Shown here: positions 1,983 through 61,200 of the stretch, piece by piece
Numbering within the stretch: position 1 is the first letter of the stretch
Layout: each line of letters starts with the position of its first letter
DNA from: Neoechinorhynchus agilis
Taxonomy: Eukaryota; Animalia; Acanthocephala
Direction: 5' to 3'
Assembly (NCBI GenBank): GCA_051530055.1
Contig: CM121343.1
Location: 6,418,389 to 6,482,388, forward strand
DNA length: 64,000 bases
Made by a program: the position numbers and the translations under genes
The notes under the pieces: generated by a model
Told to the model about the DNA's origin: nothing
What the model saw: the letters and a program-made list of their open reading frames with translations, nothing else
The model's database searches: none

Positions 1983-3221
1983 TTTATCGGGATTTTTTCA
2001 ATTTTTTCTACAAACAAAGTGTATCAATGAGCTAAAGAGCCATGGGAGCATACACTCACTCGCCAACCGACTCAGACAGCAAACGTGGATGCAAGAACAA
2101 TGACACGCAGTAGTGCAAGACTAAGACGCAATGCAGACAACGCAACACTGAAGAAAGCGTAACCGACGTTGTCGCGCTGCTCTACCATTCGGCGTATACG
2201 CACGCTCGTTCTCGGCGAATATGTCTATGTGTTTGGATATGGAGGAAAATCCCCAGCAGAAAGACACCACTGCCACGGAACGTCAGTGAACGTGTGACGT
2301 AGGAAAACACACGTGCAAAAAAAGGAGAGGAAAAAGAGAGGGTATACGCACGCGTGCACAATGACGTCACTTCTATGAGAAAGAGAGAATTGAGTGGTCG
2401 TCAATGTAAACAATTTTTTTGTTTGCCAGAAAACAAACTTGTCGGAAGTGGACTATACACTCTTTGTAAACAAATCGTTAAAATAATGTAGGACCGAAAA
2501 TCAATTTCGAATAAGAAAAGTTCCGGTTTGATAGCATAAAACACATAGAATATTCGCACTTTCAAAATCTAAAAATGCAAACATAAAAAATTCAACTTTT
2601 ATAACGTAATATAGAAAGGTTAAACATTGATCCCCCGCATATGGCACTAACCTTCGACGATAAAGACGTAGTGTATTCTCGGCCGAGAAAAGAGAAAAAC
2701 AATCACACTACCTGAATTCTTTCGGAGCAATAACGCATTTACAAATAACTGAACTAATTAGAATTAATATTCGCGAACCGAATAACCATGACTAATGTGA
2801 TAACCGATAATGTGTTGCTCATTCGAATGGATTGCATGACGTCAGTGTCGCATGGATTTAAAGTAATTTTGGTAAGATTGATTGCCTGCTATATTATGCT
2901 CAATATTCTCCAGTACGTAACTTATGTAAAGCCGTCCACTAAAATATTAACCGCTATACTCTTTTGCTGCTTGAGTTTGAACTTCAAACATGCATGGAAG
3001 GGTCAAATTGAACTGTATGCGATTAGAAATGTCGGGGTCCAAATCAATATCATACCCCGATGCGATCTTATACCTTCCATCAGCGGTTTTCGGTTTGATT
3101 TTTGTCTTTAGCTAAAGAGTTTCTTTCATCGAAAAGCAACTTTGATAATTGAACTGACGTTTATATAGTGAAACGTCGTTTGTTCGAATTTATTGGGACC
3201 GGACAATATTCGGTAATAGAG

Positions 3222-6479: not shown

Positions 6480-7129
6480 ATTTTAATTTGTTTACTTGTA
6501 TGCTTCTTATATCGTGAATTATCAAAGAAGATGATCTTAAAGGATTTTCGGATATTTGGTAAGTAGGCTTGATGCTTTCAATCATTGCCTTAAAGAACTA
6601 GCGCAATTTAGGTTATTATACAACTCGGATCAAGATCAACGTTCCGGAAAAATCTGTAAATAATTTAGTCCCATTCAATGTCGAAACCTAAGGCATTTCT
6701 ACTCAATTGACCAGATTACACTTTAGGACGTTTGTTCCATCGGACATTGCTTTTAACATGGATGAATTCTTAATTCATTATCAAAAAATAGAGATTAATT
6801 TAAAGGCAGATTACAGGCTGAAACCTAGGATAATGCCGCCGTGACCTACCTTTTAGACCTTAAGAAACGGATGAAATATTGAGATCAATAAATCAGTCTC
6901 TATTTTTCTTAAAGTCGATCCGAACCGTTCTGCCTCTTAATTGGCGTTCAGACAAATCACATTACAAGACAATATTATCCGAAAATTTTGGAAATGTGGT
7001 CAACCTTCGTATTTACGATATGTTGATTTGACAAGACTTTCTTTACGGTTTTTGTCACAAAGAATTTTTAATAATTGGAGTTTTTCAACTCCATTTGTTT
7101 TTTGACAGCGAAACATATTTATCCTCCAT

Positions 7130-11884: not shown

Positions 11885-14185
11885 TGGAACGCGGGATGAG
11901 GCGAGGTTTTCTCTTTCGAAATATTTCAAAATAATAAAAGAGTATTGAATTGGGATTCATCACCAGTGTCCATTTTCGGAAACAAAACTTGATTCAAATC
12001 ATGAAGCCCGGAAATCAAGTAGTATTTTACAATATTTTGAACATGCAGTTGAACAAACTGATCTTTACTACTGTCGCAAAGATGGCGAAAGCGTGAGAAT
12101 AAAGATTTTCTTATTGGACGGCGGTGAACATATTCCCAGTTCAAGATTCTTTTACTGTTATGAAATATTTCGAAAGAAACCTCATCCGGTCATTGCTTGT
12201 CGAGTTCAAATAGTAAGAAACTTACAAGCAATGACCCGGATGAGGCGAGGTTTTCTCTTTCGAAATATTTCAAAATAATAAAAGAATATTCAATCGGGAT
12301 TATCACCAGTGTCCATTTTCGGAAACAAAACTTGATTCAAATCATGAAGCCCGGAAATCAAGTAGTATTTTACAATATTTTGAACATGCAGTTGAACAAA
12401 CTGATCTTTACTATGTCGCAAAGATGGCGAAAGCGTGAGAATAAAGATTTTCTTATTGGACGGCGGTGAACATATTCCCAGTTCAAGATTCTTTTACTGT
12501 TATGAAATATTTCGAAGAGAAACCTCATCCGGGTCATTGCTTGTCGAGTTCAAATAGTAAGAAACTTACAAGCAATGACCCGGATGAGGCGAGGTTTTCT
12601 CTTTCGAAATATTTCAAGATAATAAAAGAATATTCAATGGGATTAATCACCAGTGTCCATTTTCGGAAACAAAACTTGATTCAAATCATGAAGCCCGGAA
12701 ATCAAGTAGTATTTTACAATATTTTGAACATGCAGTTGAACAAACTGATCTTTACTACTGTCGCAAAGATGGCGAAAGCGTGAGAATAAAGATTTTCTTA
12801 TTGGACGGCGGTGAACATATTCCCAGTTCAAGATTCTTTTACTGTTATGAAATATTTCGAAAGAGGAAACCTCATCCGGGTCATTGCTTGTCGAGTTCAA
12901 ATAGTAAGAAACTTACAAGCAATGACCCGGATGAGGCGAGGTTTTCTCTTTCGAAATATTTCAAGATAATAAAAGAATATTGAATTGGGATTAATCACCA
13001 GTGTCCATTTTCGGAAACAAAACTTGATTCAAATCATGAAGCCCGGAAATCAAGTAGTATTTTACAATATTTTGAACATGCAGTTGAACAAACTGATCTT
13101 TACTACTGTCGCAAAGATGGCGAAAGCGTGAGAATAAAGATTTTCTTATTGGACGGCGGTGAACATATTCCCAGTTCAAGATTCTTTTACTGTTATGAAA
13201 TATTTCGAATGAGGAAACCTCATCCGGGTCATTGCTTGTCGAGTTCAAATAGTAAGAAACTTACAAGCAATGACCCGGATGAGGCGAGGTTTTCTCTTTC
13301 GAAATATTTCAAGATAATAAAAGAATATTGAATTGGGATTAATCACCAGTGTCCATTTTCGGAAACAAAACTTGATTCAAATCATGAAGCCCGGAAATCA
13401 AGTAGTATTTTACAATATTTTGAACATGCAGTTGAACAAACTGATCTTTACTACTGTCGCAAAGATGGCGAAAGCGTGAGAATAAAGATTTTCTTATTGG
13501 ACGGCGGTGAACATATTCCCAGTTCAAGATTCTTTTACTGTTATGAAATATTTCGAAAGAGGAAACCTCATCCGGGTCATTGCTTGTCGAGTTCAAATAG
13601 TAAGAAACTTACAAGCAATGACCCGGATGAGGCGAGGTTTTCTCTTTCGAAATATTTCAAAATAATAAAAGAATATTCAATCGGGATTAATCACCAGTGT
13701 CCATTTTCGGAAACAAAACTTGATTCAAATCATGAAGCCCGGAAATCAAGTAGTATTTTACAATATTTTGAACATGCAGTTGAACAAACTGATCTTTACT
13801 ACTGTCGCAAAGATGGCGAAAGCGTGAGAATAAAGATTTTCTTATTGGACGAACATATTCCCAGTTCAAGATTCTTTTACTGTTATGAAATATTTCGAAA
13901 GAGGAAACCTCATCCGGGTCATTGCTTGTCGAGTTCAAATAGTAAGAAACTTACAAGCAATGACCCGGATGAGGCGAGGTTTTCTCTTTCGAAATATTTC
14001 AAGATAATAAAAGAATATTCAATCGGGATTAATCACCAGTGTCCATTTTCGGAAACAAAACTTGATTCAAATCATGAAGCCCGGAAATCAAGTAGTATTT
14101 TACAATATTTTGAACATGCAGTTGAACAAACTGATCTTTACTACTGTCGCAAAGATGGCGAAAGCGTGAGAATAAAGATTTTCTT
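11885..14185. repeat. Tandem array of 348-bp units (~6.6 copies); each unit is a ~110-bp inverted-repeat module plus ~240 bp of flank
   Basis: Identical ORF starts at 12780, 13128 and 13476 give the period. Each unit has GAAATATTTCGAAAGAGGAAACCTCATCCGGGTCATTGCTTGT...ACAAGCAATGACCCGGATGAGGCGAGGTTTTCTCTTTCGAAATATTTC. A solo terminus of the module occurs at ~45138-45160. Confidence 0.95.
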
Positions 14186-14749
14186 AATCATTTCAATAGC
14201 TCGCCTAAATGTCAATTTAGGAAAACAAAACTTGATTAATTTTGCCGCTGGAAAAACCAGTAAGGCCAGTGATTTCAGAATAATGAATCTTCCCTTATAT
14301 ACTTTTTAATAAATTCGGATAATTTAACGACTCGTTATAGATCGTAATATCACTTTCTCTATATTAAAGTTAAATTTACGGTTTTTGATGTCATCGATTT
14401 GGTTGATTCGCCTTCCAAAGTATTTAAACATTTCCATTTGCTATATTAGAAGATTTAAAACACTAAGAACGAGTTTAAAAGTGCAATAAAACATGAAAAG
14501 GCAATATTATTATTTTTGTGTTCATATAATTATTAAAACCGAATGATTCCAATATATTTGATCGATCAAATATCCAATATGACGTTTTGATCGTATGATG
14601 ACGTTGGATTTTAATCTTAACGACACGGCAGAAAGATAGATCGTCAGTCATTGAAATGTTTGAAGATTGAACTGTTCATATTGATTGTTTTATGGCGAAG
14701 AAATATTAAAATGATTTTATTTCTTCAACTCCTGAAGGGTCTGAAGCGA

Positions 14750-14855: not shown

Positions 14856-15529
14856 CATTCTCCAAGATTTCGATAAGTTCAATGTGATATCCTTTTTGAT
14901 AGCCAATTATAATAATTGATTTATTTGATAATTTTCGGCCTTCGCGTAAGCCTTATTCAGTCTATTGTTTGTTAGTAATTGACGTCCTTATTATAATTCG
15001 CTATAAAAATGTAAATGATGAACATCTCTATAAATTTTAGTATCCGATAGGTTGCTTTTATTAGTTTACCCCATAAACTTTTTATTCTTAAAGTTTTATA
15101 ATTTGTTAATACTTCCAATTCAGATGATCAACGCTCCCATTCATCGGCGCTGGCCAAAATGCTGGCTCAAAACTTACAAGCGTAGAAGATTGCGCGTTTG
15201 AAAACAACCTGATTTTAAAAAGTAAAATCATTTTAATATCTCCGGTAGAAAACAATCAGTGATTGAGATAACAGACGAATCAACAAAAGAAATCAGACTC
15301 AATTTGAGCGAGGAAAGTTGAGATTGGAAGTTGTAAGGTTATGTTTTTGTGGTAACGTTAATAATTTGATCGATATCATGGTTTCGTCGCCTATAAAAAA
15401 TTTCTGCGGGAATACATTAATTTTAGTATGAAGTACAATTAAGAATGTTTATTTTAAAAAATTCCTAAATGGTTAAATCTAAATGAATAAAATTGACGTC
15501 TAAAATCAATATCGGTTTGCAGGCTTTAT

Positions 15530-20303: not shown

Positions 20304-20890
20304 AGAATTTATTGATTTGATATTTCGATCCACTTTCTCGGATATTCTGCGGCGATTGTTTTGATTTGATATTTCGATCCACTTTCTAGGATCTTCTGCG
20401 GCGATTGTTTTGATTTGATATTTCGATCCACTTTCTCGGATCTTCTGCGGCGATTGTTTTGATTTGATATTTCGATCCATTTTCTCGGATCTTCTGCGGC
20501 GATTGTTTTGATTTGATATTTCGATCCACTTTCTCGGATCTTCTGCGGCGATTGTTTTCATTTGATGTTTCGATCCACTTTCTCGGATCTTCTGCGGCGA
20601 TTGTTTTCATTTGATATTTCGATCCACTTTCTAGGATCTTCTGCGGCGATTGTTTTGATTTGATATTTCGATCCACTTTCTCGGATCTTCTGCGGCGATT
20701 GTTTTCATTTGATATTTCGATCCACTTTCTCGGATCTTCTGCGGCGATTGTTTTCATTTGATATTTCGATCCATTTTCTCGGATCTTCTGCGGCGATTGT
20801 TTGCAAGTTTTTTTAGTTGAAAAAAAACTTGCAAACAATCGCTGAAGAAGATCCGAGATAGTGGATCGAAATATCAAATCAATAAATTCT
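20304..20890. repeat. Foldback element whose left arm is expanded into ~10 tandem 49-bp units
   Basis: Ends AGAATTTATTGATTTGATATTTCGATCCACT / GTGGATCGAAATATCAAATCAATAAATTCT; inner inverted repeat TTGCAAGTTTTTTT / AAAAAAACTTGCAA. Period is 49 (20321 to 20370). Confidence 0.93.
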
Positions 20891-27475: not shown

Positions 27476-27620
27476 TTTATTCCAGATTTATTATCGAACG
27501 GAAAATGGGTGTTTAATTTGTTTATTGCTTCAAATTTTCGACGCCTTGCGTCTTCGTCAGGAAGCTTTTCTTCGGTTGTCTGAAAAGGAATCAGAGGAGG
27601 GCAACGCTGTCCGTCAGCTC
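27476..27620 (-). mobile_element. Second copy of the Penelope-like 3' end carrying hammerhead A (27527-27565)
   Basis: Near-exact reverse complement of 44854-44998, abutting a CRE-like 3' relic at ~27640-27740. Confidence 0.85.
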
Positions 27621-27757
27621 GGTCGAAAGGACAGATGCAGCGTTTGTTTTGTAGGAGGAATTCTGCCTTTGGATCGTCTCAATCTCTTAGACAATTGCTT
27701 GACACGGTCCTTTGTCGCGGTACCAAACGAACCGATTGCTTATTGATTAGACTTATT

Positions 27758-27835
27758 ATTTAGAAGTCTTCACCCGCGGTAAATAATTTTTATTAAAAAC
27801 GTTTCGAACGTCGTCGGGTTCATCATCCGTTTATT
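27758..27835. mobile_element. Truncated left arm of the TTAGAAGTC MITE family
   Basis: TTAGAAGTCTTCACCCGCGGTAAATAATT..GTCGGGTTCAT matches the left arm of 34695-34894 and the 46-47 kb copies. Confidence 0.7.
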
Positions 27836-28324
27836 GGTTATTAATAGACGTCTTATTAGATTTATTGTTTTGAAAAACCCAAATATGTCATTGGATTAAC
27901 ATTTAGCGTTCAAGGAATTCCACAAAAAAGTCCATTTGTGGTTGGCGGAAAGTTAGCTATAAAGGTGACGTGTCAATGAAGGAACCTAATTGCCCATTCT
28001 AAAGAGTTGGCAGATATTCTTTCCATGTAGATGAAAATGGTTCAAAAGTGAAGGCGTGTGTCCGGCGATCAATTTTTTTGTGAAATCCGGTAAAACTCTT
28101 TTGGCTTAAACATTTTAAATTGAAAATCGAGTATATACAAGAAACGCTTAAATATCTTCGATCTATAAAGCAGAGCAAAATTCGGTATACTAAAAGAAAA
28201 TTGGTCAAATCACATATTATAATCGAGCAACGCTACCATCCAAATTTAAATGGATTTCATACCACATTAATGAGAATCGCACGTCAATATATTTGAGTGC
28301 ATCGATGATAAAATAAGTTTTAGC

Positions 28325-36457: not shown

Positions 36458-38938
36458 CTGTTGCTGAGGTGATTCCTACTCTCCGGACAATATATTTATT
36501 GCGATATTTCGCTGGGCAAATCCAGAATTCTCAAGCAATTTTAGATTAATGCTTGAGAATGTCGGATTTGCCCAGCGAAGTATCGCAATATCTTTATTGC
36601 CCGGAGAGTAGGAATCACCTCAGCAACACTATAATACCTCCGAGGAACCTTCTACATCAGACGAATATTTGTTCTGTTGCTGAGGTGATTCCTACTCTCC
36701 GGACAATATATTTATTGCGATATTTCGCTCGGCAAATCCAGAATTCTCCAATTTTGGATAATGCTTGAGAATCCCCACGAAATATCCAATATCTTGCCGA
36801 GGACACGCAACACTATAATACTCGAGGAACCTTTACATCAGACGAATATTTGTCTGTGCTGGTGATCGACAAATATTTATGCGATATTTCACGGCAAATC
36901 CAAAATTCTCAAACAATTTTGGATTAATGCTTGAGAATGCTGGATTTACCCAACGAAATATCGCAATATCTTTATTGTCCGGAGAGCAGAATCACCTCCG
37001 CAACACTATAATACCTCCGAGGAACCTTTTACATCAGACGAATATTTGTTCTGTTGCTGAGGTGATTCCTACTCTCCGGACAATATATTTATTGCGATAT
37101 TTCACCGGGCAAATCCAACATTCTCAAACAATTTTGGATTAATGCTTGAGAATGCTGGATTTACCCAGCGAAATATCGCAATATCTTTATTGTCCGGAGA
37201 GCAGAATCACCTCCGCAACACTATAATACCTCCGAGGAACCTTTTACATCAGACGAATATTTGTTCTGTTGCTGAGGTGATTCCTACTCTCCGGACAATA
37301 TATTTATTGCGATATTTCACCGGGCAAATCCAACATTCTCAAACAATTTTGGATTAATGCTTGAGAATGCTGGATTTGCCCAACGAAATATCGCAATATC
37401 TTTATTGTCGGAGAGAATCACCTCCGCAACACTATAATACCTCCGAGGAACCTTTTACATCAGACGAATATTTGTTCTGTTGCTGAGGTGATTCCTACTC
37501 TCCGGACAATATATTTATTGCGATATTTCGCTCGGCAAATCCAGCATTCTCAAGCAATTTTGGATAAATGCTTGAGAATGCTGGATTTGCCCAACGAAAT
37601 ATCGCAATATCTTTATTGTCCGGAGAGCAGAATCACCTCAGCAACACTATAATACCTCCGAGGAACCTTTTACATCAGACGAATATTTGTTCTGTTGCTG
37701 AGGTGATTCCTACTCTCCGGACAATATATTTATTGCGATATTTCGCTCGGCAAATCCAGAATTCTCAAGCAATTTTGGATAAATGCTTGAGAATGCTGGA
37801 TTTGCCCAACGAAATATCGCAATATCTTTATTGTCCGGAGAGCAGAATCACCTCAGCAACACTATAATACCTCCGAGGAACCTTCTACATCAGACGAATA
37901 TTTGTTCTGTTGCTGAGGTGATTCCTACTCTCCGGACAATAAAGATATCGATTATTGCGATATTTCGCCGGGCAAATCCAACATTCTCAAACAATTTTGG
38001 ATTAATGCTGGATTTACCCAGCGAAATATCGCAATATCTCTATTGTCCGGAGAGCAGGAATCACCTCAGCAACACTATAATACCTCCGAGGAACCTTTTA
38101 CATCAGACGAATATTTGTTCTGTTGCTGAGGTGATTCCTACTCTCCGGACAATAAAGATATTGCGATATTTCGCTCGGCAAATCCTGCATTCTCAAGCAA
38201 CTTTGGATAAATGCTTGAGAATGCTGGATTTGCCCAACGAAATATCGCAATATCTTTATTGTCCGGAGAGCAGAATCACCTCAGCAACACTATAATACCT
38301 CCGAGGAACCTTTTACATCAGACTAATATTTGTTCTGTTGCTGAGGTGATTCCTACTCTCCGGACAATAAAGATATATTCATTGCGATATTTCGCCGGGC
38401 AAATCCAACATTCTCAAACAATTTTGGATTAATGCTGGATTTACCCAGCGAAATATCGCAATAATCAATATCTTTATTGTCCGGAGAGCAGGAATCACCT
38501 CAGCAACACTATAATACCTCCGAGGAACCTTTTACATCAGACGAATATTTGTTCTGTTGCTGAGGTGATTCCTACTCTCCGGACAATAAAGATATTGCGA
38601 TATTTCGCTCGGCAAATCCTGCATTCTCAAGCAACTTTGGATTAATGCTTGAGAATGCTGGATTTGCCCAACGAAATATCGCAATATCTTTATTGTCCGG
38701 AGAGCAGGAATCACCTCAGCAACACTATAATACCTCCGAGGAACCTTTTACATCAGACGAATATTTGTTCTGTTGCTGAGGTGATTCCTACTCTCCGGAC
38801 AGCATTCTCAAGCAACTTTGGATTAATGCTTGAGAATGCCGGATTTGCCCAGCGAAGTATCGCAATATCTTTATTGTCCGGAGAGCAGGAATCACCTCAG
38901 CAACACTATAATACCTCCGAGGAACTTTTTACATCAGA
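36458..38938. repeat. Tandem array of ~213-215-bp units (~12 copies), each a ~165-bp foldback plus a short tail; whole array flanked by a 12-bp direct repeat
   Basis: Unit TGTTGCTGAGGTGATTC..TCTCAAGCA-loop-TGCTTGAGAA..GAATCACCTCAGCAACA. TTCCTTCCATGA occurs at 36446-36457 and 38939-38950. Confidence 0.95.
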
Positions 38939-42249: not shown

Positions 42250-42489
42250 GACTACCTTTAGGATTTACTTTTGATTGAAATAACGAATAGGACTGGATAA
42301 ATAATGATCTCGGATTGTAAAATGCAGCAGCTATCTCTGATCTTGAATATTAGTTAAAAACTTAGTTAACATTTAAAACAATAAATTCTCCTTTTTTTGA
42401 CTTGTGTGTGTGGTCGATTTACTCGCCCGGTTAAAAATCATTTTATTTTCATATATCATTGCTTTCGGGGTAAATTTGATTATACGTTA

Positions 42490-44385
42490 GAAAATCCAGG
42501 GTGTTATCCATATTTATTAATTGCGAAATATTTCACAAGGTTTTTCTCGCCTCTTCAGTCGCTATTGAATGTAAGTTTTAAATGTGTGAGTTGATGTCTT
42601 GGCGAATCCTGTCCCCGGTGTTATCAATACTCATTTATTTGAGAAATATTTCACAAGGTTTTTTCGCCTCTTCAGTCGCCATTGATTGTAAGTTTTAAAT
42701 GTGTGAGTTGGTGTCTTGGCGAATTCGGTCCCCAGTGTTGTCGATACTCATTTATTTGAGAAATATTTCACAAGGTTTTCCTTGCCTCTTCAGTCGCTAT
42801 TGATTGTAAGTTTTAAATGTGTGAGTTGGTGTCTTGGCGAATTCGGTCCCCAGTGTTGTCGATACTCATTTATTTGAGAAATATTTCACAAGGTTTTCCT
42901 TGCCTCTTCAGTCGCTATTGATTGTAAGTTTTAAATGTGTGAGTTGGTGTCTTGGCGAATTCGGTCCCCAGTGTTGTCGATACTCATTTATTTGAGAAAT
43001 ATTTCACAAGGTTTTCCTTGCCTCTTCAGTCGCCATTGATTGTAAGTTTTAAATGTGTGAGTTGCGAATCCTGTCCCCGGTGTTATCGATACTCATTTAT
43101 TTGAGAAATATTTCACAAGGTTTTCCTTGCCTCTTCAGTCGCTATTGATTGTAAGTTTTAAATGTGTGAGTTGCGAATCCTGTCCCCGGTGTTGTCGATA
43201 CTCATTTATTTGAGAAATATTTCACAAGGTTTTCCTTGCCTCTTCAGTCGCTATTGATTGTAAGTTTTAAATGTGTGAGTTGCGAATTCTGTCCCCGGTG
43301 TTGTCGATACTCATTTATTTGAGAAATATTTCACAAGGTTTTCCTTGCCTCTTCAGTCGCTATTGATTGTAAGTTTTAAATGTGTGAGTTGCGAATTCGG
43401 TCCCCAGTGTTGTCGATACTCATTTATTTGAGAAATATTTCACAAGGTTTTCCTTGCCTCTTCAGTCGCTATTGATTGTAAGTTTTAAATGTGTGAGTTG
43501 CGAATTCTGTCCCCAGTGTTGTCGATACTCATTTATTTGAGAAATATTTCACAAGGTTTTCCTTGCCTCTTCAGTCGCCATTGATTGTAAGTTTTAAATG
43601 TGTGAGTTGCGAATCCTGTCCCCGGTGTTGTCGATACTCATTTATTTGAGAAATATTTCACAAGGTTTTCCTTGCCTCTTCAGTCGCTATTGATTGTAAG
43701 TTTTAAATGTGTGAGTTGGTGTCTTGGCGAATTCGGTTCCCAGTGTTGTCGATACTCATTTATTTGAGAAATATTTCACAAGGTTTTCCTTGCCTCTTCA
43801 GTCGCTATTGATTGTAAGTTTTAAATGTGTGAGTTGGTGTCTTGGCGAATTCGGTTCCCAGTGTTGTCGATACTCATTTATTTGAGAAATATTTCACAAG
43901 GTTTTCCTTGCCTCTTCAGTCGCTATTGATTGTAAGTTTTAAATGTGTGAGTTGGTGTCTTGGCGAATCCTGTCCCCAGTGTTGTCGATACTCATTTATT
44001 TGAGAAATATTTCACAAGGTTTTCGTTGCCTCTTCAGTCGCCATTGATTGTAAGTTTTAAATGTGTGAGTTGGTGTCTTGGCGAATCCTGTCCACGGTGT
44101 TATCGATACTTATTTATTTGAGAAATATTTCACAAGATTTTCCTTGCCTCTTCAGTCGCTATTGATTGTAAGTTTTAAATGTGTGAGTTGGTGTCTTGGC
44201 GAATTCGGTTCCCAGTGTTGTCGATACTCATTTATTTGAGAAATATTTCACAAGGTTTTCCTTGCCTCTTCAGTCGCTATTGATTGTAAGTTTTAAATGT
44301 GTGAGTTGGTGTCTTGGCGAATCCTGTCCACGGTGTTATCGATACTTATTTATTTGAGAAATATTTCACAAGGTTTTTCTCGCCT
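42490..44385 (-). repeat. Satellite of 118/109-bp units (~16-17 copies), each with a minimal hammerhead-like core on the minus strand
   Basis: Period 118 (42721, 42839, 42957) or 109 (43066). The minus strand reads GCGA-CTGAAGA-G-GCAAGG-AAAA-CCTTGT-GAAA-TATT-TC(G/T)C. Confidence 0.9.
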
Positions 44386-44908
44386 AGGCATGTTATCCCC
44401 GCTTTCGTTAACAGAATGGTCTATATGAGGGGCAAGCTGGTCAACAGGCGGTCGATTCGTGCTACGTTGGAGAAACTTAGAGAACAATGCCTAATGATGA
44501 GCTTGAGGAACTCTAGGGAGTCATTGCATTTTCTCAAGCGGAATTTGTTCAAGTATAGGGAGGAACTGCGCTCGTTGTGTTCAACAGGATGCTTGGAACG
44601 AATTATGGAGATGATCGATAGAAGCGTAGCTCCGTCATACCGGTCGATCCCATGGGCTACCCATTTCGCTACCTCTCACGTTGGTGCCAGCCCAGCCTTC
44701 GAGATTGAGGTGATGCACAAGGCATCCGATCCGGTGGATCTCTCGATTGCCGAAGCGCTATGCATTAATCGTGAGAAAGTAGTTGGATTGAGCGGGGTTA
44801 CGAGCAGCAAGGACAGACACAACGAGGCAGAGGGGATGCTCAATAAGAGGGATGAGCTGACGGACAGCGTTGCCCTCCTCTGATTCCTTTTCAGACAACC
44901 GAAGAAAA

Positions 44909-44947
44909 GCTTCCTGACGAAGACGCAAGGCGTCGAAAATTTGAAGC
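44909..44947 (+). ncRNA. Minimal type I hammerhead ribozyme motif (hammerhead A)
   Basis: GCTTC-CTGACGA-A-GACGC-AAG-GCGTC-GAAA-ATTT-GAAGC: 5-bp stem I, 5-bp stem II, and a palindromic AAATTT stem III of the dimer-forming type. Confidence 0.75.
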
Positions 44948-45027
44948 AAGAAATAAATAAAACACCCATTTTCCGTTCGATAATAAATCTGGAATAAAGA
45001 CACCAACTCACACATTTAAAACTTACA

Positions 45028-45080
45028 ATCAATGGCGACTGAAGAGGCAAAGAAAACCTTGTGAAATATTTCTCAAATAA
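45028..45080 (+). ncRNA. Minimal type I hammerhead-like motif (hammerhead B, same as the satellite unit)
   Basis: CAATGGCGA-CTGAAGA-GGCAAAGAAAACCTTGT-GAAA-TATT-TCTCAAAT; stems I and II each have a mismatch in this copy. Confidence 0.5.
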
Positions 45081-45499
45081 ATGAGTAACGACAACATCGG
45101 GGACAGGATTCGCCAAGGTACAATCATTTTATTATTAGGAAATATTTCGAAAGAGGAAACATCGACTTATCAATCGTTGCTTACTCAAATTTTATACTAC
45201 CCTGACGGATTTTCTTTTAATTAGAGGGAAATGAGAAAAATAAAGTTTCACCTCGATTTTAAGAAATTTCGAATTGTAAAAGGAATGAAAATTTAACAGA
45301 TTTATGGACGACAAAGCATGTGAAGCGTATGAACGTAATTTATGAATTTGAATAGCGGAAAACAGATTAAATCTCCTAAGGAAAACACTGTCAATTTCGA
45401 TATCCGATACAATAAATACGAAAATAAATTTTCTACAAAAGTATCAATAACTTTAATGAAATCTAATGTCTGAGATAAAGCAACAATCTCGTCTAAAAT

Positions 45500-47760
45500 G
45501 AGTATTGTCTTCAATTAAAATGAAGTGATTGAACTATTGTCGATAACAGGCGCTGATTTCTAATATAAAATCGATTTTCATACACGCACACGCAAAATGG
45601 TCATTATATTCAAAACTAAAATTTTATGAACTAAATAAATTGTTAAAAAAATACGACAGCGAAAAGTGATTTGAAAGTTGAATTCTAATAACGAGCCATA
45701 GACAATTATTGAACTACCTTATTACCAAGTCCTTCAACGGAAGAAAATTTCCTTCACTTAAGAAGTTTTCGTTTGGGGAAAAGTAACAGTCTTAATCGGT
45801 TCCTCTGAGAAATGTTCCAATTTTTGGGAACGGCGAAATTTTATTTCGTTCCCTTTTAACTTCATCTGGACCATAGAAGCTCGTTGGTCTGATTTCAATA
45901 TTTCTGCATTATCCTACGATTTTTCAATTTCAGGGTAAGAAATAAAGCCTTTAAAGCGTTCTATAAAATGTATATTTTCATAGTTTAAATTATGAATGTC
46001 TAAAAATCGCGAGAGATGTTGAATTGTCTTTAGATTTGAAAAACGCAATTTTATTATCCACGAGATTTAAAAACGTTGCGCTCCCGACGAAGTTCGTAGA
46101 ACGTCTTTTTAATCGAAATAATTATTTCGACCGAGGGTGTAGACTTCTAACCATAATAATTCTCTAATCACATTCCCTCCGGTATCTCACATATCGACAA
46201 TTAGAGAAATAACTTATCGTTAGCATCGGCCACTTTTTCAATTTTATTTGGTTATGATTCCATTTGGCAGATTTCTCGGAATCTTGTTGATTTATCTATT
46301 AATTAGAGAAGTCTACATCCGCGGTCGAAATAATTATTTCGATTAAAGACGTTCTGCGAACCTCGTCGGGTTTTGTTTACTAACAAACTGAGATGATGAA
46401 CCCTTTAAGAGGTTCGTAGAACGTCTTTTTAATCGAAATAATTATTTCGACCGAGGGTGTAGACTTCTAACCATAATAATTCTCTAATCACATTCCCTCC
46501 GGTATCTCACATATCGACAATTAGAGAAGTAACTTATCGTTAGCATCGGCCACTTTTTCAATTTTATTTGGTTATGATTCCATTTGGCAGATTTCTCGGA
46601 ATCTTGTTGATTTATCTATTAATTAGAGAAGTGTTTAGAAGTCTACATCCGCGGTCGAAATAATTATTTCGATTAAAGACGTTCTGCGAACCTCGTCGGG
46701 TTTTGTTTACTAACAAACTGAGATGATGAACCCTAAGAGGTTCGTAGAACGTCTTTTTAATCGAAATAATTATTTCGACCGAGGGTGTAGACTTCTAACC
46801 ATAATAATTCTCTAATCACATTCCCTCCGGTATCTCACATATCGACAATTAGAGAAGTAACTTATCGTTAGCATCGGCCACTTTTTCAATTTTATTTGGT
46901 TATGATTCCATTTGGCAGATTTCTCGGAATCTTGTTGATTTATCTATTAATTAGAGAAGTGTTTAGAAGTCTACATCCGCGGTCGAAATAATTATTTCGA
47001 TTAAAGACGTTCTGCGAACCTCGTCGGGTTTTGTTTACTAACAAACTGAGATGATGAACCCTTTAAGAGGTTCGTAGAACGTCTTTTTAATCGAAATAAT
47101 TATTTCGACCGAGGGTGTAGACTTCTAACCATAATAATTCTCTAATCACATTCCCTCCGGTATCTCACATATCGACAATTAGAGAAGTAACTTATCGTTA
47201 GCATCGGCCACTTTTTCAATTTTATTTGGTTATGATTCCATTTGGCAGATTTCTCGGAATCTTGTTGATTTATCTATTAATTAGAAGTTTAGAAGTCTAC
47301 ATCCGCGGTCGAAATAATTATTTCGATCAAAGACGTTCTGCGAACCTCGTCGGGTTTTGTTTACTAACAAACTGAGATGATGAACCCTTTAAGAGGTTCG
47401 TAGAACGTCTTTTTAATCGAAATAATTATTTCGACCGAGGGTGTAGACTTCTAACCATAATAATTCTCTAATCACATTCCCCTCTACCTCCTCCTCGCAC
47501 ATATCGACAAAATTTCAATCGATTCAGATTATGTATGGTCGCAATAATCCTCACAAAAAAATTAATCCTATTTACCGCGTTCTGGTCTGTAATGAGTCCA
47601 TGTTTCCGATATTTTTTCGGTTTCATTATTTATCTCCCCTTTTGATAATTTTCTCCAGTGTCGATTTCATAAATTCATAATAAATCGTTTTTTTTAACAA
47701 ATTCGTCCACTAAACCGAAAATCGAACGAATGCTTTTAGAGGCACTCGTTGCCATCTATA
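45500..47760 (-). pseudogene. Possible decayed leucine-rich-repeat gene interrupted by the 328-bp array
   Basis: Stop-ridden minus-strand pieces INKIPRNLPNGI, FLNLVDNKIAF, LNYENIHFIERFKG and NIEIRPTSFYG look like LRR fragments; a hydrophobic stretch follows near 45600. Confidence 0.3.
46090..47480. repeat. Tandem array of ~328-bp units (~4.2 copies): a 164-bp TTAGAAGTC-family MITE plus ~164 bp of flank
   Basis: TTAGAAGTCTACATCC..GGTGTAGACTTCTAA at 46635-46798, repeated at 46963 and 47289. Confidence 0.93.
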
Positions 47761-50649: not shown

Positions 50650-52056
50650 ATGAGCAATCGTAGATATCCAGTCGTTGACCTCAGTGATTTGAACAGCGAT
50701 TCAAGTGATGAAGAAGTCATATCGGCAACCAATAAAAGGATTCAGAACCACAGACGATATGAAATTGAACATATTCCAAGTAAATTGGAGCGTAGCTGTC
50801 ATGAGGACACAGGGTTCAAGGTTTCAACTAAAGACGGAATTGAACAGTCTCTTCGAAGCCATAAAGACAATGATTCAAATTTAGTGGAAGCATTACATTT
50901 TCAGCTAAGTGAGCATCCATTAGAACCCAACGTTTTTAATGTTCAAAACCGACGGGCTATATCGGTAGAGGCGGATCTATCACTTTCCCTTGACAATTCA
51001 AATTTAAGTATTAATACCAGTTATTCGAATCCAGAAAAAAAGACAAAATCGAATAAGCGAAAAGTGATGATAGAGTCATCCGATTCTGATCGTGACAGTG
51101 ACTCTTCTAAGTCGAAATTTTCAGAGCCAGAAACTGAATTATGCTTCTCCGTGTCTCATAGTGATACTAAGATCTCAAGGGAATGGAACTCAAATTTTAG
51201 AAGATTGTCATTAAGTTCTAACCTTCAAGAAGACAGCTTCATCGTTGAAGATTCTTCTTTTCGTCGAAATGAAATATTTCCGGAAAGTGTTAAGCGGAAC
51301 TCATCACCTACCTCTCATCCTTCGCAATGTGAATATCTTGACTTGATAACATCACTTAACGCAGAAATCGATGGAAATTGCAAGCGGCATACGAATGCGG
51401 TATACATTTTAAGCCACTTCCCAGGAAATTGGAAATTGGCTGCAAAGTTTATCTACGAAGATGCCAATATTCATGTATTTCGAGGACAGCTTCCCTCTGA
51501 CATTGAAATAAAATGGAATAAACGCCTCACGATGACAGCAGGGAGGTTTATATGGAGAAAACCAAAATCTGACAATCAATTTACGAAATGTTTCATTGAA
51601 ATGTCTTCTAAGCTAAACAATACTGTCCAACGATTCAGAGACACTTTATTGCATGAGATGTGCCACGTCGCGAATGTAATGATTGATAATTTAACTAATG
51701 AGAATCATGGGAAGCATTGGAAGAAATGGACTAAAAAGGTCGCCAAGCAATATCCACAGATCCCTCCAATAAAAACGTTCCACGAATATGTAACCGATAA
51801 AAAGTATCGGTATAGATGCGTTGGATGCAATAAAGTCATCAGCGGACTTCATAAATTAAGAAATCTCCAAAGTTACCGGTGTGTTCGATGTCACGGACGT
51901 TTTGTTCGGGATACAAAAGTTGACACAAACAAAAAGGAATTAAACTCATTCGCTAAATTTGTGAAAGATAACTACGCAAATACCAAATCGAGATATGGAA
52001 AAAACTTCGGGGACACAATGAAAATGTTAAGTGTAGAGTATCGCAAAAACAAATGA
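50650..52056 (+). CDS. GCNA: GCNA/ACRC-type SprT-domain protein
   Basis: Acidic Ser-rich disordered N-terminus with a SIM-like PVVDL, SprT domain (WNKRLTMTAG..RFRDTLLHEMCH..HGKHWK), zinc motif YRCVGC..RCVRCHG and a C-terminal HMG-like FAKFVKDNY. Confidence 0.93.
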   Translation: MSNRRYPVVDLSDLNSDSSDEEVISATNKRIQNHRRYEIEHIPSKLERSCHEDTGFKVSTKDGIEQSLRSHKDNDSNLVEALHFQLSEHPLEPNVFNVQNRRAISVEADLSLSLDNSNLSINTSYSNPEKKTKSNKRKVMIESSDSDRDSDSSKSKFSEPETELCFSVSHSDTKISREWNSNFRRLSLSSNLQEDSFIVEDSSFRRNEIFPESVKRNSSPTSHPSQCEYLDLITSLNAEIDGNCKRHTNAVYILSHFPGNWKLAAKFIYEDANIHVFRGQLPSDIEIKWNKRLTMTAGRFIWRKPKSDNQFTKCFIEMSSKLNNTVQRFRDTLLHEMCHVANVMIDNLTNENHGKHWKKWTKKVAKQYPQIPPIKTFHEYVTDKKYRYRCVGCNKVISGLHKLRNLQSYRCVRCHGRFVRDTKVDTNKKELNSFAKFVKDNYANTKSRYGKNFGDTMKMLSVEYRKNK

Positions 52057-58251: not shown

Positions 58252-61200
58252 ATGACCAATCACGATAATGATATCGTATACGTCAACGCGACATTATCAT
58301 ATCTTCGAGGTAATTAAAATTGGACAAAAAATTTGTTGATAAACAAAACCTGATCATTTTAGGCGATATTGCGTTCGATGATTTAGAGCGAGCGTTTAAT
58401 TTTGGTGAGAAATACAGATTGCACCAATCAGATGATGACAGCAGTGAATTTTCGAGTGATTCCGAGATTGAAGAAATGATTAACCGAAATGGTAACATGG
58501 ATGATTTGACTGTAAACGATTTGGATAAAGTCATTGATTTGATTGAAAAGAAAGGTGATGGTCGGAAACGCCGAGCTGCTTTTCCGATTGAAAGAAGGGA
58601 TTTATCAAAGACTAAGAGAGTTGATAGACAACGTCGCCAATATCTACCAAATGATCTACAAATCTTGATGGGTAAAGCCAATACCGATTATGCGCTAGGG
58701 AATTTCAATGATGCCATTGAAAAATGCAAAGATCTGATTAGCAAAGCTCCTTTATCATCTGAACCTTACGCTACATTGGCTCTCATTTATAATGATCTTG
58801 GCGAACGGCAAAAATCATTCGAGGTACTTTTAATAATTTATATTTAAAATAAAGTATGTGGAAGTGGGGAAAAAATATATCCAAGACTGACTTTAATTGG
58901 AATATTTCGTCCAATCACATTGGACTTCTTCAGTCGCAAACAATAATTGACTGAAGAAGTCCAATGTGATTGGACGAAATATTCCAATTAAAGTAAGTCG
59001 TTGATATATTTTTTCCCCACTTCCACATACTCATGGATTTTATCTTTAATTAAAATAAATTGTATGTACATTATATAAAGCTGGATTTGTTGTCTGCTTA
59101 TTTGTCCAATCAAAAAGAAGACTGGATCAGAATGTTCAATAAATGTGTCGCCTTATCGGAAATTGAAATGGCTGGTGTCGCAATTACAAGAGGTTTGAAC
59201 TACTATTTCTAGTAAATTATTGAAGTATAATTTAGCAATCTATCGAGATCCTAAGGATATCGACCTACAATTTCAGCGAATAAGATTCTTAGATTTTAAT
59301 AAGATGGAAAGTCGATACAATTCGGCGCTGAAAAAATTATTCACAACTCTGATTGGCTCGTCGTATTGTGACGAGCGAGTGCTTTTAAGCGTTGTTGAAA
59401 AATTAATCGAGAAATTCGAAGCAGCAGGCCGAATCGATCGAGCAGAACGAGCCTTACGAGAAGTTTTTCAGAAAATGGGAAACCGCCTACCGGATAAAGG
59501 TGAGTTTAACAAAGTTTTATCTTTGATTTCTTCCGTGGCGGATTTTTCTATTCGTTGCGTCACGCGGATTTACAATCGATTTTCAATATTATAAAAAGTT
59601 TTGCTTCGAATTGGAACTCATTAATTGTTTTTTAAGAACGAATTGCTCATGTTTTTACGTGGCAACTTCAGTATAAAAACATTAATTATGGCTAATTTTA
59701 TGCACCGATTTGATGCTTAACTGCTCTCATTTTGTTTACAAGCACATTTTTAAATTCATTATTAAATAATAACTTATTCAATTTTGTTTTCTACATCGGA
59801 GAAGTGATGTTACCACTTTAACTCGGATGAGTCGTTATGAGTTCCAACATTTCTCCGGATCCTCAGGTACCTCCAGGAGGCGGGACTCGTCAGTGAGTTT
59901 CCTCCCTTCAGCGGTATTTCGTCCCTTTGGTTGTGCGTCATTGGCGATCGTGGATTCGAACCCTTGACCCTGAAACAGGGATCAGGGGCGCGAGTCCGCT
60001 GGACCACCTCCGCGCATTTTTAACAATAAAACTCAAATTATATAATTCTGCGTTAATTTTGCTTAAAATAAAATTGGATATTCGGATACGAGAGTTGTTT
60101 TTTTAGGATAACTGAAAATCCAATTTTATTTTAAGCAAAATTAACGCAGAATTATATAATTTGAGTTTTATTGTTAAAAAATAATAACCTATGTAAAGTT
60201 CATGTAGTTGACAAAGTTCTTTTTGCAAAAATTCAAACACAAAAAGTATCAATTATCGAGATATAGCCCAGCGGACCTTCCTATACTACCGAACCCGTAA
60301 TCCACTCCAAAATCAACAATCGATTTCTTTAAAACAAATCTGAACTCGAGTTTTATGAGAACCCAAACGGGGACATGGGCCCAATTATTTGTTAATTAAC
60401 AAATGACACATCACGGAAAATCCTCTACTGATTTGAGAGTATTTTTAAACATCGTTTACAAAAAACTTAAGAAAATCGCCCGTGAAATGCTACTCCTTCT
60501 GGGAAACGATGGGCCAAACTCATATACCGAATTTATTCGCATAGAAGAAGTCCGACGAAACTGATAAAAAATTGTCCCAAAGGGAATCAATAAATTCATT
60601 TCTATATCACCAAATAAAATAAATCAATTAACAATTTCTTTACACCAATCAGATACGAGAGTTGTTTTTTTAGGATAACCGAAAATCCAATTTTATTTTA
60701 AGCAAAATTAACGCAGAATTATATAATTTGAGTTTTATTGTTAAAAATAATAACCTATATAAAGTTCATGTAGTTGACAAAAATTTATCCGGATAATTGA
60801 AGTTCGACTGAATTTTCAAATCTTTGATCTTATTGGTCGTAGATTTCTCAAAAATTCTTTTCTAACCGTTTTAAGTTATTGAAATTTCGACTCAGTTTTC
60901 AAATCGTTGATCTTATTAATCGTAGATTTCTCAAAAATTCGTTTCTAATCGTTTTAAGTTATTGAAATTTCGACTCAATTTTCAAATCGTTGATCTTATT
61001 AATCGTAGATTTCTCAAAAATTCTTTTCTAACCGTTTTAAGTTATTGAAATTTCGATTGAATTTTCAAATCTTTGATCTTATTAGTCGTAGATTTCTCAA
61101 AAATTCGTTTCTAATCGTTTTAAATTATTGAAATTTCGACTGAATTTTCAAATCTTTGATGTTATTAATCGTAGATTTCTCAAAAAATCTTTTCTAATCG

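Follow-up and report, generated by a model that had tools for sequence, protein, structure and literature searches.

A 64,000-nucleotide stretch of the genome of the acanthocephalan Neoechinorhynchus agilis (GenBank assembly GCA_051530055.1, contig CM121343.1, positions 6,418,389 to 6,482,388; the stretch in its full length is referred to as the window) contains a satellite array in which every complete unit carries a hammerhead ribozyme (HHR) motif of the type found in Penelope-like elements (PLEs). On balance, and with some reserve, this array is interpreted as a tandem, non-autonomous 'tail module' of the PLE kind, which would have been built by PLE-type integration and faces, head-to-head, the 5'-truncated or rearranged remnant of a PLE from another family. 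The structure as a whole spans positions 42496-45118 of the window and comprises sixteen units in the minus sense, head-to-head with an open reading frame (ORF) remnant, a PLE tail with a hammerhead of its own (HHR-A) and one further unit, all in the plus sense (Table 1).

Tandem Repeats Finder placed the satellite at positions 42517-44385 (period 118, 16.3 copies, 95 % matches), and unit-by-unit alignment extends the array to approximately 42496 through the outermost unit, which is the most divergent of the array and fades out near this point. From the right, the sixteen complete units are arranged in blocks of six 118-bp, six 109-bp and four 118/117-bp units, with all six of the 109-bp units lacking CAAGACACC. 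The innermost unit is reduced to a 36-bp stub (44350-44385), which is cut between the hammerhead core and helix II and abuts the ORF at 44385. Each unit starts with an AC-rich stretch, followed by the satellite hammerhead (HHR-B; a minimal type I hammerhead) and approximately 48 nt to the unit end. The monomer boundary, between GCCAAG and ACACC, is given by the single inverted unit, and the 9-nt indel distinguishing the 118- and 109-bp units falls exactly at this boundary, which is 48 nt distant from the predicted HHR-B cleavage site. The array units are a mosaic of variants with 0-11 differing positions, in which neighbouring units may be identical in pairs, the right end shows a 2-unit relationship and the 109-bp units form a contiguous block. 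Measured from the HHR-B cleavage site, the outer ends of the structure lie 31 and 48 nt beyond it, within or adjacent to the AC-rich sequence ACAACAC...CAAGACACCAACUCACAC. A preliminary description of this DNA had already recognised that the array abuts a PLE piece and that an inverted unit is located at the far end, and both observations stand.

On the minus strand, HHR-B is present in 16/16 complete units as GCGA CUGAAGA G GCAAGG AAAA CCUUGU GAAA UAUU UCUC or close variants thereof, and on sequence criteria it is a genuine PLE-type minimal type I hammerhead motif, as initially proposed. The core residues C3-U4-G5-A6-N7-G8-A9 and G12-A13-A14 are kept in 17/17 copies (CUGAAGA ... GAA, with U17; H17 is not G), and cleavage is predicted after U17, 31 nt 3' of C3. 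The C3 residues of the inner units are located at positions 44273, 44155, 44037, 43919, 43801, 43683, 43574, 43465, 43356, 43247, 43138, 43029, 42911, 42793 and 42675. The base bulged after A9 is a G, while helix II comprises 6 bp in most units and 4-6 bp in variants. The stem II of 6 bp first described therefore holds for most units, although its closing pair must be corrected to G10.1-U11.1, which is found in every unit; G10.1 is retained, and U11.1 may plausibly have arisen through a C-to-T transition, given that a CpG is involved. In place of a helix III hairpin, a palindromic 15.x-16.x segment (AUAU) occurs. The palindrome reported earlier (AAUAUU) is real but longer than the six nucleotides assigned to it, as it spans 10 nt (GAAAUAUUUC), and this sequence occurs 33 times in the window compared to 0.38 occurrences expected. 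Only the copy with C3 at 42558, in the outermost unit, has UCGC and thus the intact stem I noted for it previously. The remaining 16/17 copies (fifteen array units and the inverted unit) have UCUC, with a C x U mismatch at 2.3/1.3, so that helix I consists of 2 bp, the mismatch and then 1 bp.

Using an RNAmotif-like descriptor (CUGANGA, followed by no or one bulged base, a helix II with 4 bp or more and its closing pair at 10.1/11.1, GAA, a palindromic A...U segment with a minimum length of 4 nt, and any base except G as H17), 22 perfect-core sites were found in the 64-kb window, against a mean of 0.01 in 200 dinucleotide-preserving shuffles. When one core mismatch was allowed, two further sites were found against 0.15 expected. 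The Rfam hammerhead models (Hammerhead_1/3/II/HH9/HH10), by comparison, gave no match at the gathering score in the whole window (cmscan), and at E<=10 with relaxed filters only chance small RNA and small nucleolar RNA matches, and no hammerhead, were obtained for positions 42300-45300. This outcome is expected, as the motif lacks the helix III hairpin which the Rfam models require (PMC4209133). Of the two search strategies suggested in the preliminary description, it is thus the descriptor, and not the covariance models, that recovers the motif.

Eight hammerhead families could be distinguished in N. agilis, with families A-F in the window and families G and H in paralogous PLE loci (G in L001 and L006, H in L003). 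Besides HHR-B, the window families include HHR-A (44909-44947, with a second copy at 27560), HHR-C (58933/58951), HHR-D (20842) and the one-mismatch relics E (14960) and F (27829). All eight share the core, the bulged base after A9 and the palindromic helix III, while their helices covary. One bulged base is present in all 11 sequences of the eight families, though the descriptor allowed 0 or 1, and G10.1-C11.1 is found in all seven other families, with HHR-B alone having G-U. The helix III palindromes are AUAU in HHR-B and AAUU, AGCU and ACGU in other families. In a spliced alignment of 32 columns and nine representatives, helix I, which lies outside the descriptor, is 83 % paired, with 4/4 pairs changed on both sides. 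Over the structure as a whole, the proportion of paired cells is 93 % (shuffles, 55 %), with a covariation score of 0.99 versus 0.23 (0/500 shuffles); the pairing of helices II and III included in these values is not independent evidence, as it is imposed by the search. HHR-B is by this comparison a somewhat degraded member of a real, covarying family. That AT-rich repeat DNA resembles a hammerhead here by chance, with which the silence of the Rfam models even at E<=10 and relaxed filters would agree, is extremely improbable in view of the 22 sites against 0.01 expected and the four independent families (A-D) among them. Furthermore, features that were not imposed by the search, namely the universal bulged base, the covariation of helix I and the position after PLE stop codons, are all present.

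Lunse, Weinberg and Breaker reportedly described dimer-acting PLE variants in 2017. The minimal hammerheads (min-HHRs) of PLEs are defined by the catalytic boxes, one unpaired nucleotide between A9 and 10.1, a conserved G10.1-C11.1 pair and a palindromic 15.2-16.2 segment that implies dimers, in combination with a long helix II (6-8 bp) and a short helix I (4-5 bp) whose loop is ill-defined. They are found in PLE tails, in tandem and as opposite-strand pairs 100-700 bp apart (Cervera & De la Pena 2014, PMC4209133). HHR-B resembles these in its CUGANGA...GAAA core, the unpaired base after A9, the 6-bp helix II of most units, the open helix I (4 bp in the outermost unit) and the palindrome in place of the helix III hairpin. 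It differs in the G10.1-U11.1 pair (G-C in the published families), the mostly mismatched helix I and the 10-nt palindrome, which overlaps G12-A14. As the Drosophila virilis min-HHR has a helix I of only 2 bp (PMC4209133), the helix I mismatch of HHR-B is compatible with membership of this class. Published min-HHRs cleave poorly without protein (PMC4209133, PMC11167929).

Further hammerhead-related sequences are distributed across the window. HHR-C (58853-59031; CUGAAGA A GUCCAAU GUG AUUGGAC GAA AUAU U) has a perfect core and occurs as a bare head-to-head inverted pair, with 83-nt arms that are 96 % complementary, a 13-nt spacer and both arms ending within helix I; it is located just past an ORF (58320-58847) and may be intronic. 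Relic E (14880-14990, minus strand; core CUGAAUA, AAUU, and a helix II of 5 bp with G-C as closing pair) is the closest dispersed relative of the 118-bp unit within the window (z 4.8), and the unit also resembles one arm of a 348-bp satellite of 6.6 copies at 11894-14186 (z 5.0). Each unit of the latter contains two hammerhead-like relics (CGGAUGA G ... C GAAAUAUUUC), placed head-to-head about a palindromic centre, and has the 10-nt palindrome and its flanks in common with the 118-bp unit. A fragment of this 348-bp family is located at 45127-45171 (minus strand), just beyond the right boundary of the structure. Relic F (27741-27847; CGGAUGA U GAAC...GUUC GAA ACGU U, 4-bp helix I) adjoins the second PLE tail copy and is related, in both orientations, to a 328-bp array of 4.3 copies (46092-47481), 1 kb to the right of the structure. 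When metagenome contigs were scanned for the exact HHR-B pattern, 0 matches were obtained.

The neighbour of the array can safely be regarded as the 3' remnant of a PLE. Residues 82-165 of its ORF product (165 aa) share 50 % identity with P0004, and the identity with P0001 is 36 % over 154 aligned positions (query residues 30-165). P0001-P0004 are N. agilis paralogues, and the three closest relatives of the ORF are annotated as hypothetical proteins on the same record, CM121343.1. Residues 82-165 align with the C-terminal halves of P0001-P0004 (pairwise E-values of 2e-23 and 2e-25), while the N-terminal halves of the paralogues carry ...VVY...C..C...YIGKTER...EH. No reverse transcriptase (RT) domain is present in the ORF copy (44386-44883), in which only the C-terminal half of the endonuclease (EN) is recognisable. 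A Pfam search with the 165-aa product returned nothing, and a PDB sequence search with an EN profile returned nothing meaningful. Residues 1-81 were compared with the PLE N-terminus and with the N-terminal EN half, as a possible degenerate version of it, but neither tblastn nor shuffled Smith-Waterman alignment gave a significant result (z <= 1.3). In BLASTP the ORF runs collinearly into P0001, with the extension not significant alone. The first 81 codons share an uninterrupted frame with the EN part and exceed the background in GC content, which suggests former coding sequence. The 'mini-ORF' that had been called Penelope-like thus deserves this name for residues 82-165, while the remainder is not demonstrably PLE. 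The earlier view of a 'deleted' PLE found no support, as simple 5' truncation or divergence is equally possible when the 81 N-terminal codons match no tested part of a PLE.

The tail of this remnant includes a second hammerhead, HHR-A, which is absent from the preliminary description. It has a 5-bp helix I and a 5-bp helix II closed by G-C, with a predicted cut between 44942 and 44943, and the minimum-free-energy fold of the monomer is exactly the hammerhead fold (-13.3 kcal/mol). In the paralogous loci L001, L003 and L006 a hammerhead occurs at the homologous place after the stop codon, with different helices (GCCG/CGGC and AGCU in L003; GCCGU/GCGGC and AAUU, with the core variant CCGAAGA, in L001 and L006), while L004 and L005 contain decayed copies. 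Together with HHR-A, these post-stop hammerheads argue that the ORF belongs to a PLE-type element with a hammerhead of its own. In L001, the ORF preceding the EN region contains a thumb/linker-like stretch, which we take to be PLE-like. The hammerheads of L001 (6475) and L006 (6077) belong to independent copies of one PLE family, in which the C at position 4 of the core (CCGAAGA), accompanied by otherwise perfect helices I and II, represents either a family-wide inactivating change or a tolerated variant. Locus L003 contains two head-to-head PLE remnants (~2860-2910, minus strand, and 6750-6795, plus strand) approximately 3.8 kb apart, both with a perfect-core hammerhead (AGCU palindrome) after the stop, and with helix II differing at one compensated position.

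Judged by these comparisons, the adjacent PLE remnant is of a different family and is not the parent of the satellite. Its tail carries the distinct HHR-A, a tail copy with 98 % identity elsewhere in the window is free of satellite, and the similarity between the satellite unit and the PLE tail is not significant (z 1.7). The adjacent tail was ruled out as the satellite's source on these three grounds, and the suggestion that the satellite had been caught next to its parent element must be abandoned. The second tail copy runs into unrelated sequence after ...GGAATAAA, which places the end of the PLE tail at approximately 44998, and the inverted unit that follows is therefore a separate piece.

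Table 1 Features of the satellite structure and of the second PLE tail copy, in positions of the window (UTR, untranslated region)
Feature	Position	Strand	Remarks
Satellite array	42496..44385	-	16 complete units and a truncated innermost unit; GC 38 %
HHR-B, outermost unit	42523..42562	-	C3 at 42558; the sole copy in which helix I (4 bp, GCGA/UCGC) is intact; as a monomer, its minimum-free-energy structure is that of the hammerhead
HHR-B, representative inner unit	44238..44277	-	GCGA CUGAAGA G GCAAGG AAAA CCUUGU GAA AUAU U UCUC; G10.1-U11.1; helix I C x U mismatch
Head-to-head junction	44382..44389	.	8-nt palindrome GCCTAGGC centred on 44385/44386; sequence read directly
ORF, 5' part	44386..44628	+	81 codons, in frame with the EN part; GC above surroundings; no significant match to tested PLE segments
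PLE-type GIY-YIG endonuclease domain, C-terminal half	44629..44883	+	Residues 82-165; stop codon 44881-44883
PLE 3' UTR/tail	44884..44998	+	End set by comparison with the second copy at 27476-27620
HHR-A, minimal hammerhead of the PLE	44909..44947	+	GCUUC CUGACGA A GACGC AAG GCGUC GAA AAUU U GAAGC; ~25 nt past the stop codon
Single inverted satellite unit	44997..45117	+	Exactly one unit and a 3-nt AAG terminal redundancy (both ends); HHR-B at 45035-45074
Second PLE tail copy	27476..27620	-	145 bp, 5'-truncated, 98 % identical, HHR-A identical; no satellite after it

Insertions of PLEs may be truncated at the 5' end, form partial tandems or include inverted copies (Craig et al. 2021, PMC8557442). 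The PLE protein of an anole cleaves and extends both DNA strands in vitro, with reverse transcription starting internally, at an AC-rich stem-loop downstream of the hammerhead; insertion is independent of hammerhead catalysis, and cleavage by the hammerhead requires protein to be present (Frangieh et al. 2024, PMC11167929). The structure in N. agilis resembles these insertions (PMC8557442, PMC11167929) in its 5' truncation, partial tandems, inverted head-to-head copy and AC-rich ends tens of nucleotides past the hammerhead, but differs in that one arm is a 16-unit, tail-only array, while the other is a chimera of one unit and a PLE remnant of another family. Under the favoured interpretation, the unit would be a tail-only, non-autonomous PLE module, made up of the hammerhead and the region where reverse transcription starts. 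A PLE enzyme would cut and extend both DNA strands, with reverse transcription starting internally, downstream of the hammerhead, and this dual-strand priming would give rise to inverted, 5'-truncated partners and partial tandems. On one arm a multi-unit satellite transcript would have been copied, and on the other a single unit, followed by a jump at AAG to PLE RNA, with the array afterwards reshaped by unequal exchange. The hammerhead would be an inherited part of the module, weakened in 16/17 copies, and its activity would not be required for the formation of the array.

The head-to-head layout recurs in the HHR-C pair (58853-59031), in the PLE pair of L003 and in a 49-bp array with an inverted unit (20312-20880). 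The latter consists of ten 49-bp copies (20312-20802), which are hammerhead-like on the minus strand with two core substitutions (CCGCAGA), followed by a palindromic spacer (20803-20832) and one inverted, intact-core unit (HHR-D, C3 at 20842). Arrays derived from hammerhead tail modules have units of 118/109, 49, 348 and 328 bp. Other pieces of PLEs are likewise found in tandem. Six 100 % identical 115-bp copies are located inside the PLE GIY-YIG (EN) coding region of L001 (5452-6142), with no hammerhead in the unit; here an internal piece of a retrotransposon has been amplified very recently. Locus L005 (5830-6892) contains eight 133-bp copies (98 % matches), the unit of which extends from the last ~100 nt of the PLE ORF through the stop codon into the 3' UTR, as far as the first strand of the hammerhead's helix II, with a decayed hammerhead after the last copy. 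Three other PLE-derived arrays (49 bp, 115 bp in L001 and 133 bp in L005) were thus amplified without a working hammerhead.

Tandem repeats are abundant in this region, with approximately 17 kb of the 64-kb window (27 %) belonging to at least eleven arrays with periods of 38-439 bp. An ordinary satellite would fit this setting, in which slippage or unequal crossing-over multiplied one PLE-tail relic, or two such relics in head-to-head position, purely at the DNA level, with the hammerhead as a passenger fossil and the PLE remnant as an unrelated later insertion or neighbour. Unequal exchange typically leaves features such as the identical neighbouring units, the 2-unit relationships and the contiguous 109-bp block, and the existence of arrays of PLE coding pieces without hammerheads agrees with such an origin. 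However, DNA-level amplification leaves unexplained why an array with a single inverted end unit is found twice in 64 kb (the main locus and 20312-20880) and why the outer ends are in nearly the same unit phase, nor does it account for the many arrays derived from hammerhead tail modules, and this origin is considered rather unlikely.

Several points nonetheless weigh against PLE-type integration and the PLE assignment on which it is based. Considering that ~27 % of the window is tandem repeat, DNA-level amplification could have made the array without a reverse transcription step. The integration mechanism is taken from a single vertebrate PLE in vitro, and inspection by eye of positions 42496 and 45118 revealed no target-site duplication. 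The Pfam GIY-YIG matches of the paralogues are sub-threshold (E-values of 4e-4 and 0.03), and word-indexed and exhaustive protein searches with the ORF, the thumb/linker ORF of L001 and the EN profile yielded only hypothetical proteins of N. agilis and never reached a named PLE outside this species. An AlphaFold2 model of P0003 (4-sequence alignment) had a predicted local distance difference test (pLDDT) score of 49.8, and Foldseek comparison of this model, which is too poor for a fold match, against the PDB gave no match below E 0.1, so that the GIY-YIG fold received no structural confirmation. As the protein searches gave no named PLE, the membership of the ORF rests on its motifs, the domain order and the hammerhead in the tail.

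Tandem repeats with hammerheads have been described as PLE-related, non-autonomous elements under the name of non-LTR (long terminal repeat) retrozymes (Cervera & de la Pena 2020, PMC7229834). The same reading is argued explicitly, for consensus lengths of 51-972 bp, by Li, Clavereau & Pollet (2026 preprint, 10.64898/2026.07.22.740005), and derivation from the pseudo-LTRs (pLTRs) of PLEs has been proposed (PMC7229834; preprint 10.64898/2026.07.22.740005). The placement of hammerhead tandem repeats among such elements in the preliminary description agrees with this literature (PMC4209133, PMC7229834, preprint 10.64898/2026.07.22.740005). The N. agilis satellite is similar in being a short, low-GC (38 %) tandem repeat whose units each carry one type I hammerhead, and in sharing its genome with PLEs (in the window and at five other loci). 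With 109/118 bp, its units are smaller than the ~170-400 nt of the 2020 definition, but fall within the 51-972 bp of the preprint (10.64898/2026.07.22.740005), and hence can no longer be called unusually short. It further differs in that its hammerhead is minimal, with an open helix I and without loop-loop contacts, where the canonical hammerhead has contacts between the loops of helices I and II, and in that the predicted circle is not highly self-paired. Classical satellites such as newt satellite 2, Sm-alpha of Schistosoma and pDo500 of cave crickets are likewise tandem repeats in which each unit has one type I hammerhead, the helix III of which is weak or palindromic and depends on a second copy. 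These differ, however, in having canonical hammerheads with tertiary contacts between helices I and II and units of ~330-500 bp, and they are documented to be transcribed and self-cleaving (PMC4209133, PMC7229834).

If the satellite were a true retrozyme, minus-strand multimers would self-cleave at HHR-B as dimers and be ligated to circles of 109/118 nt, which a PLE RT would copy in a rolling-circle manner, and the tandem complementary DNA would then integrate. The tandem layout would provide the partner for a dimeric helix III, PLE remnants co-occur, the 9-nt indel is located exactly at the monomer boundary of the inverted unit, and precedent exists (PMC7229834; preprint 10.64898/2026.07.22.740005, units of 51-972 bp). 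The core is also unmutated in every unit, but as divergence is low across the array this is weak evidence of activity. Set against these points, the monomer boundary is 48 nt off the predicted cleavage site, helix I is mismatched in 16/17 units and G-U occupies 10.1-11.1 in all of them, while the minimum-free-energy fold of the inner unit differs from the hammerhead fold. A dimer helix III of only 4 bp would not be stable (+1.6 kcal/mol), and a duplex over the 10-nt palindrome (-7.8 kcal/mol) would draw G12-A14 into pairing. The circular unit RNAs are not unusually structured in the hammerhead-sense strand (-9.9 and -10.5 kcal/mol; z -0.64 and -0.85 versus shuffles), and the units form a mosaic and are not copies of one template. 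Furthermore, sister arrays were amplified with dead or absent hammerheads, and hammerhead catalysis is dispensable for PLE insertion in vitro (PMC11167929). A retrozyme in this sense thus appears improbable. A single, recent rolling-circle origin of the array was ruled out by the mosaic of variants.

A more general proposal, which is offered tentatively and is judged unlikely to hold as it stands, is that the PLE machinery itself seeds satellites. Tail modules of 49-118 nt and internal coding pieces (115 and 133 bp) would be turned into arrays when, in the course of dual-strand target-primed reverse transcription, the enzyme repeatedly jumps between templates or initiates anew, and the signature of this process would be an array accompanied by a single inverted unit. 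A considerable part of the ~27 % tandem-repeat content would then be retrotransposon-made, and the 109/118-nt units could rank among the smallest hammerhead-bearing retroelement RNAs. Other sequences in the window include a 215/426-bp array (36868-38801) based on a long internal palindrome, which contains CGAAAUAUCGCAAU-like ends, and an intronless host ORF of the SprT-like type (PF10263; 468 aa) at 50650-52056 (6469038-6470444 of CM121343.1). In the assembly annotation, a SNAPC3-domain gene is located immediately upstream of the latter (L002, 1-217).

No report of hammerhead-bearing, PLE-linked tandem repeats in Acanthocephala was found in the literature, and the N. agilis transcriptome paper is silent on them. 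The kind of satellite is already known, while the phylum is new as far as the literature found, and Acanthocephala can be added to the animals with hammerhead tandem repeats tied to PLEs. The recurring signature of an array plus one inverted unit may point to retrotransposon-driven satellite birth. The structure bears on how PLE integration yields inverted and tandem arrangements, and leaves current understanding unchanged. A single 64-kb window offers a natural series, from the intact HHR-A of a PLE tail, through a satellite version weakened at U11.1 and U1.3 and one unit with an intact helix I, to dead sister arrays, and this series is useful for asking whether hammerhead catalysis matters in the spread of such repeats.

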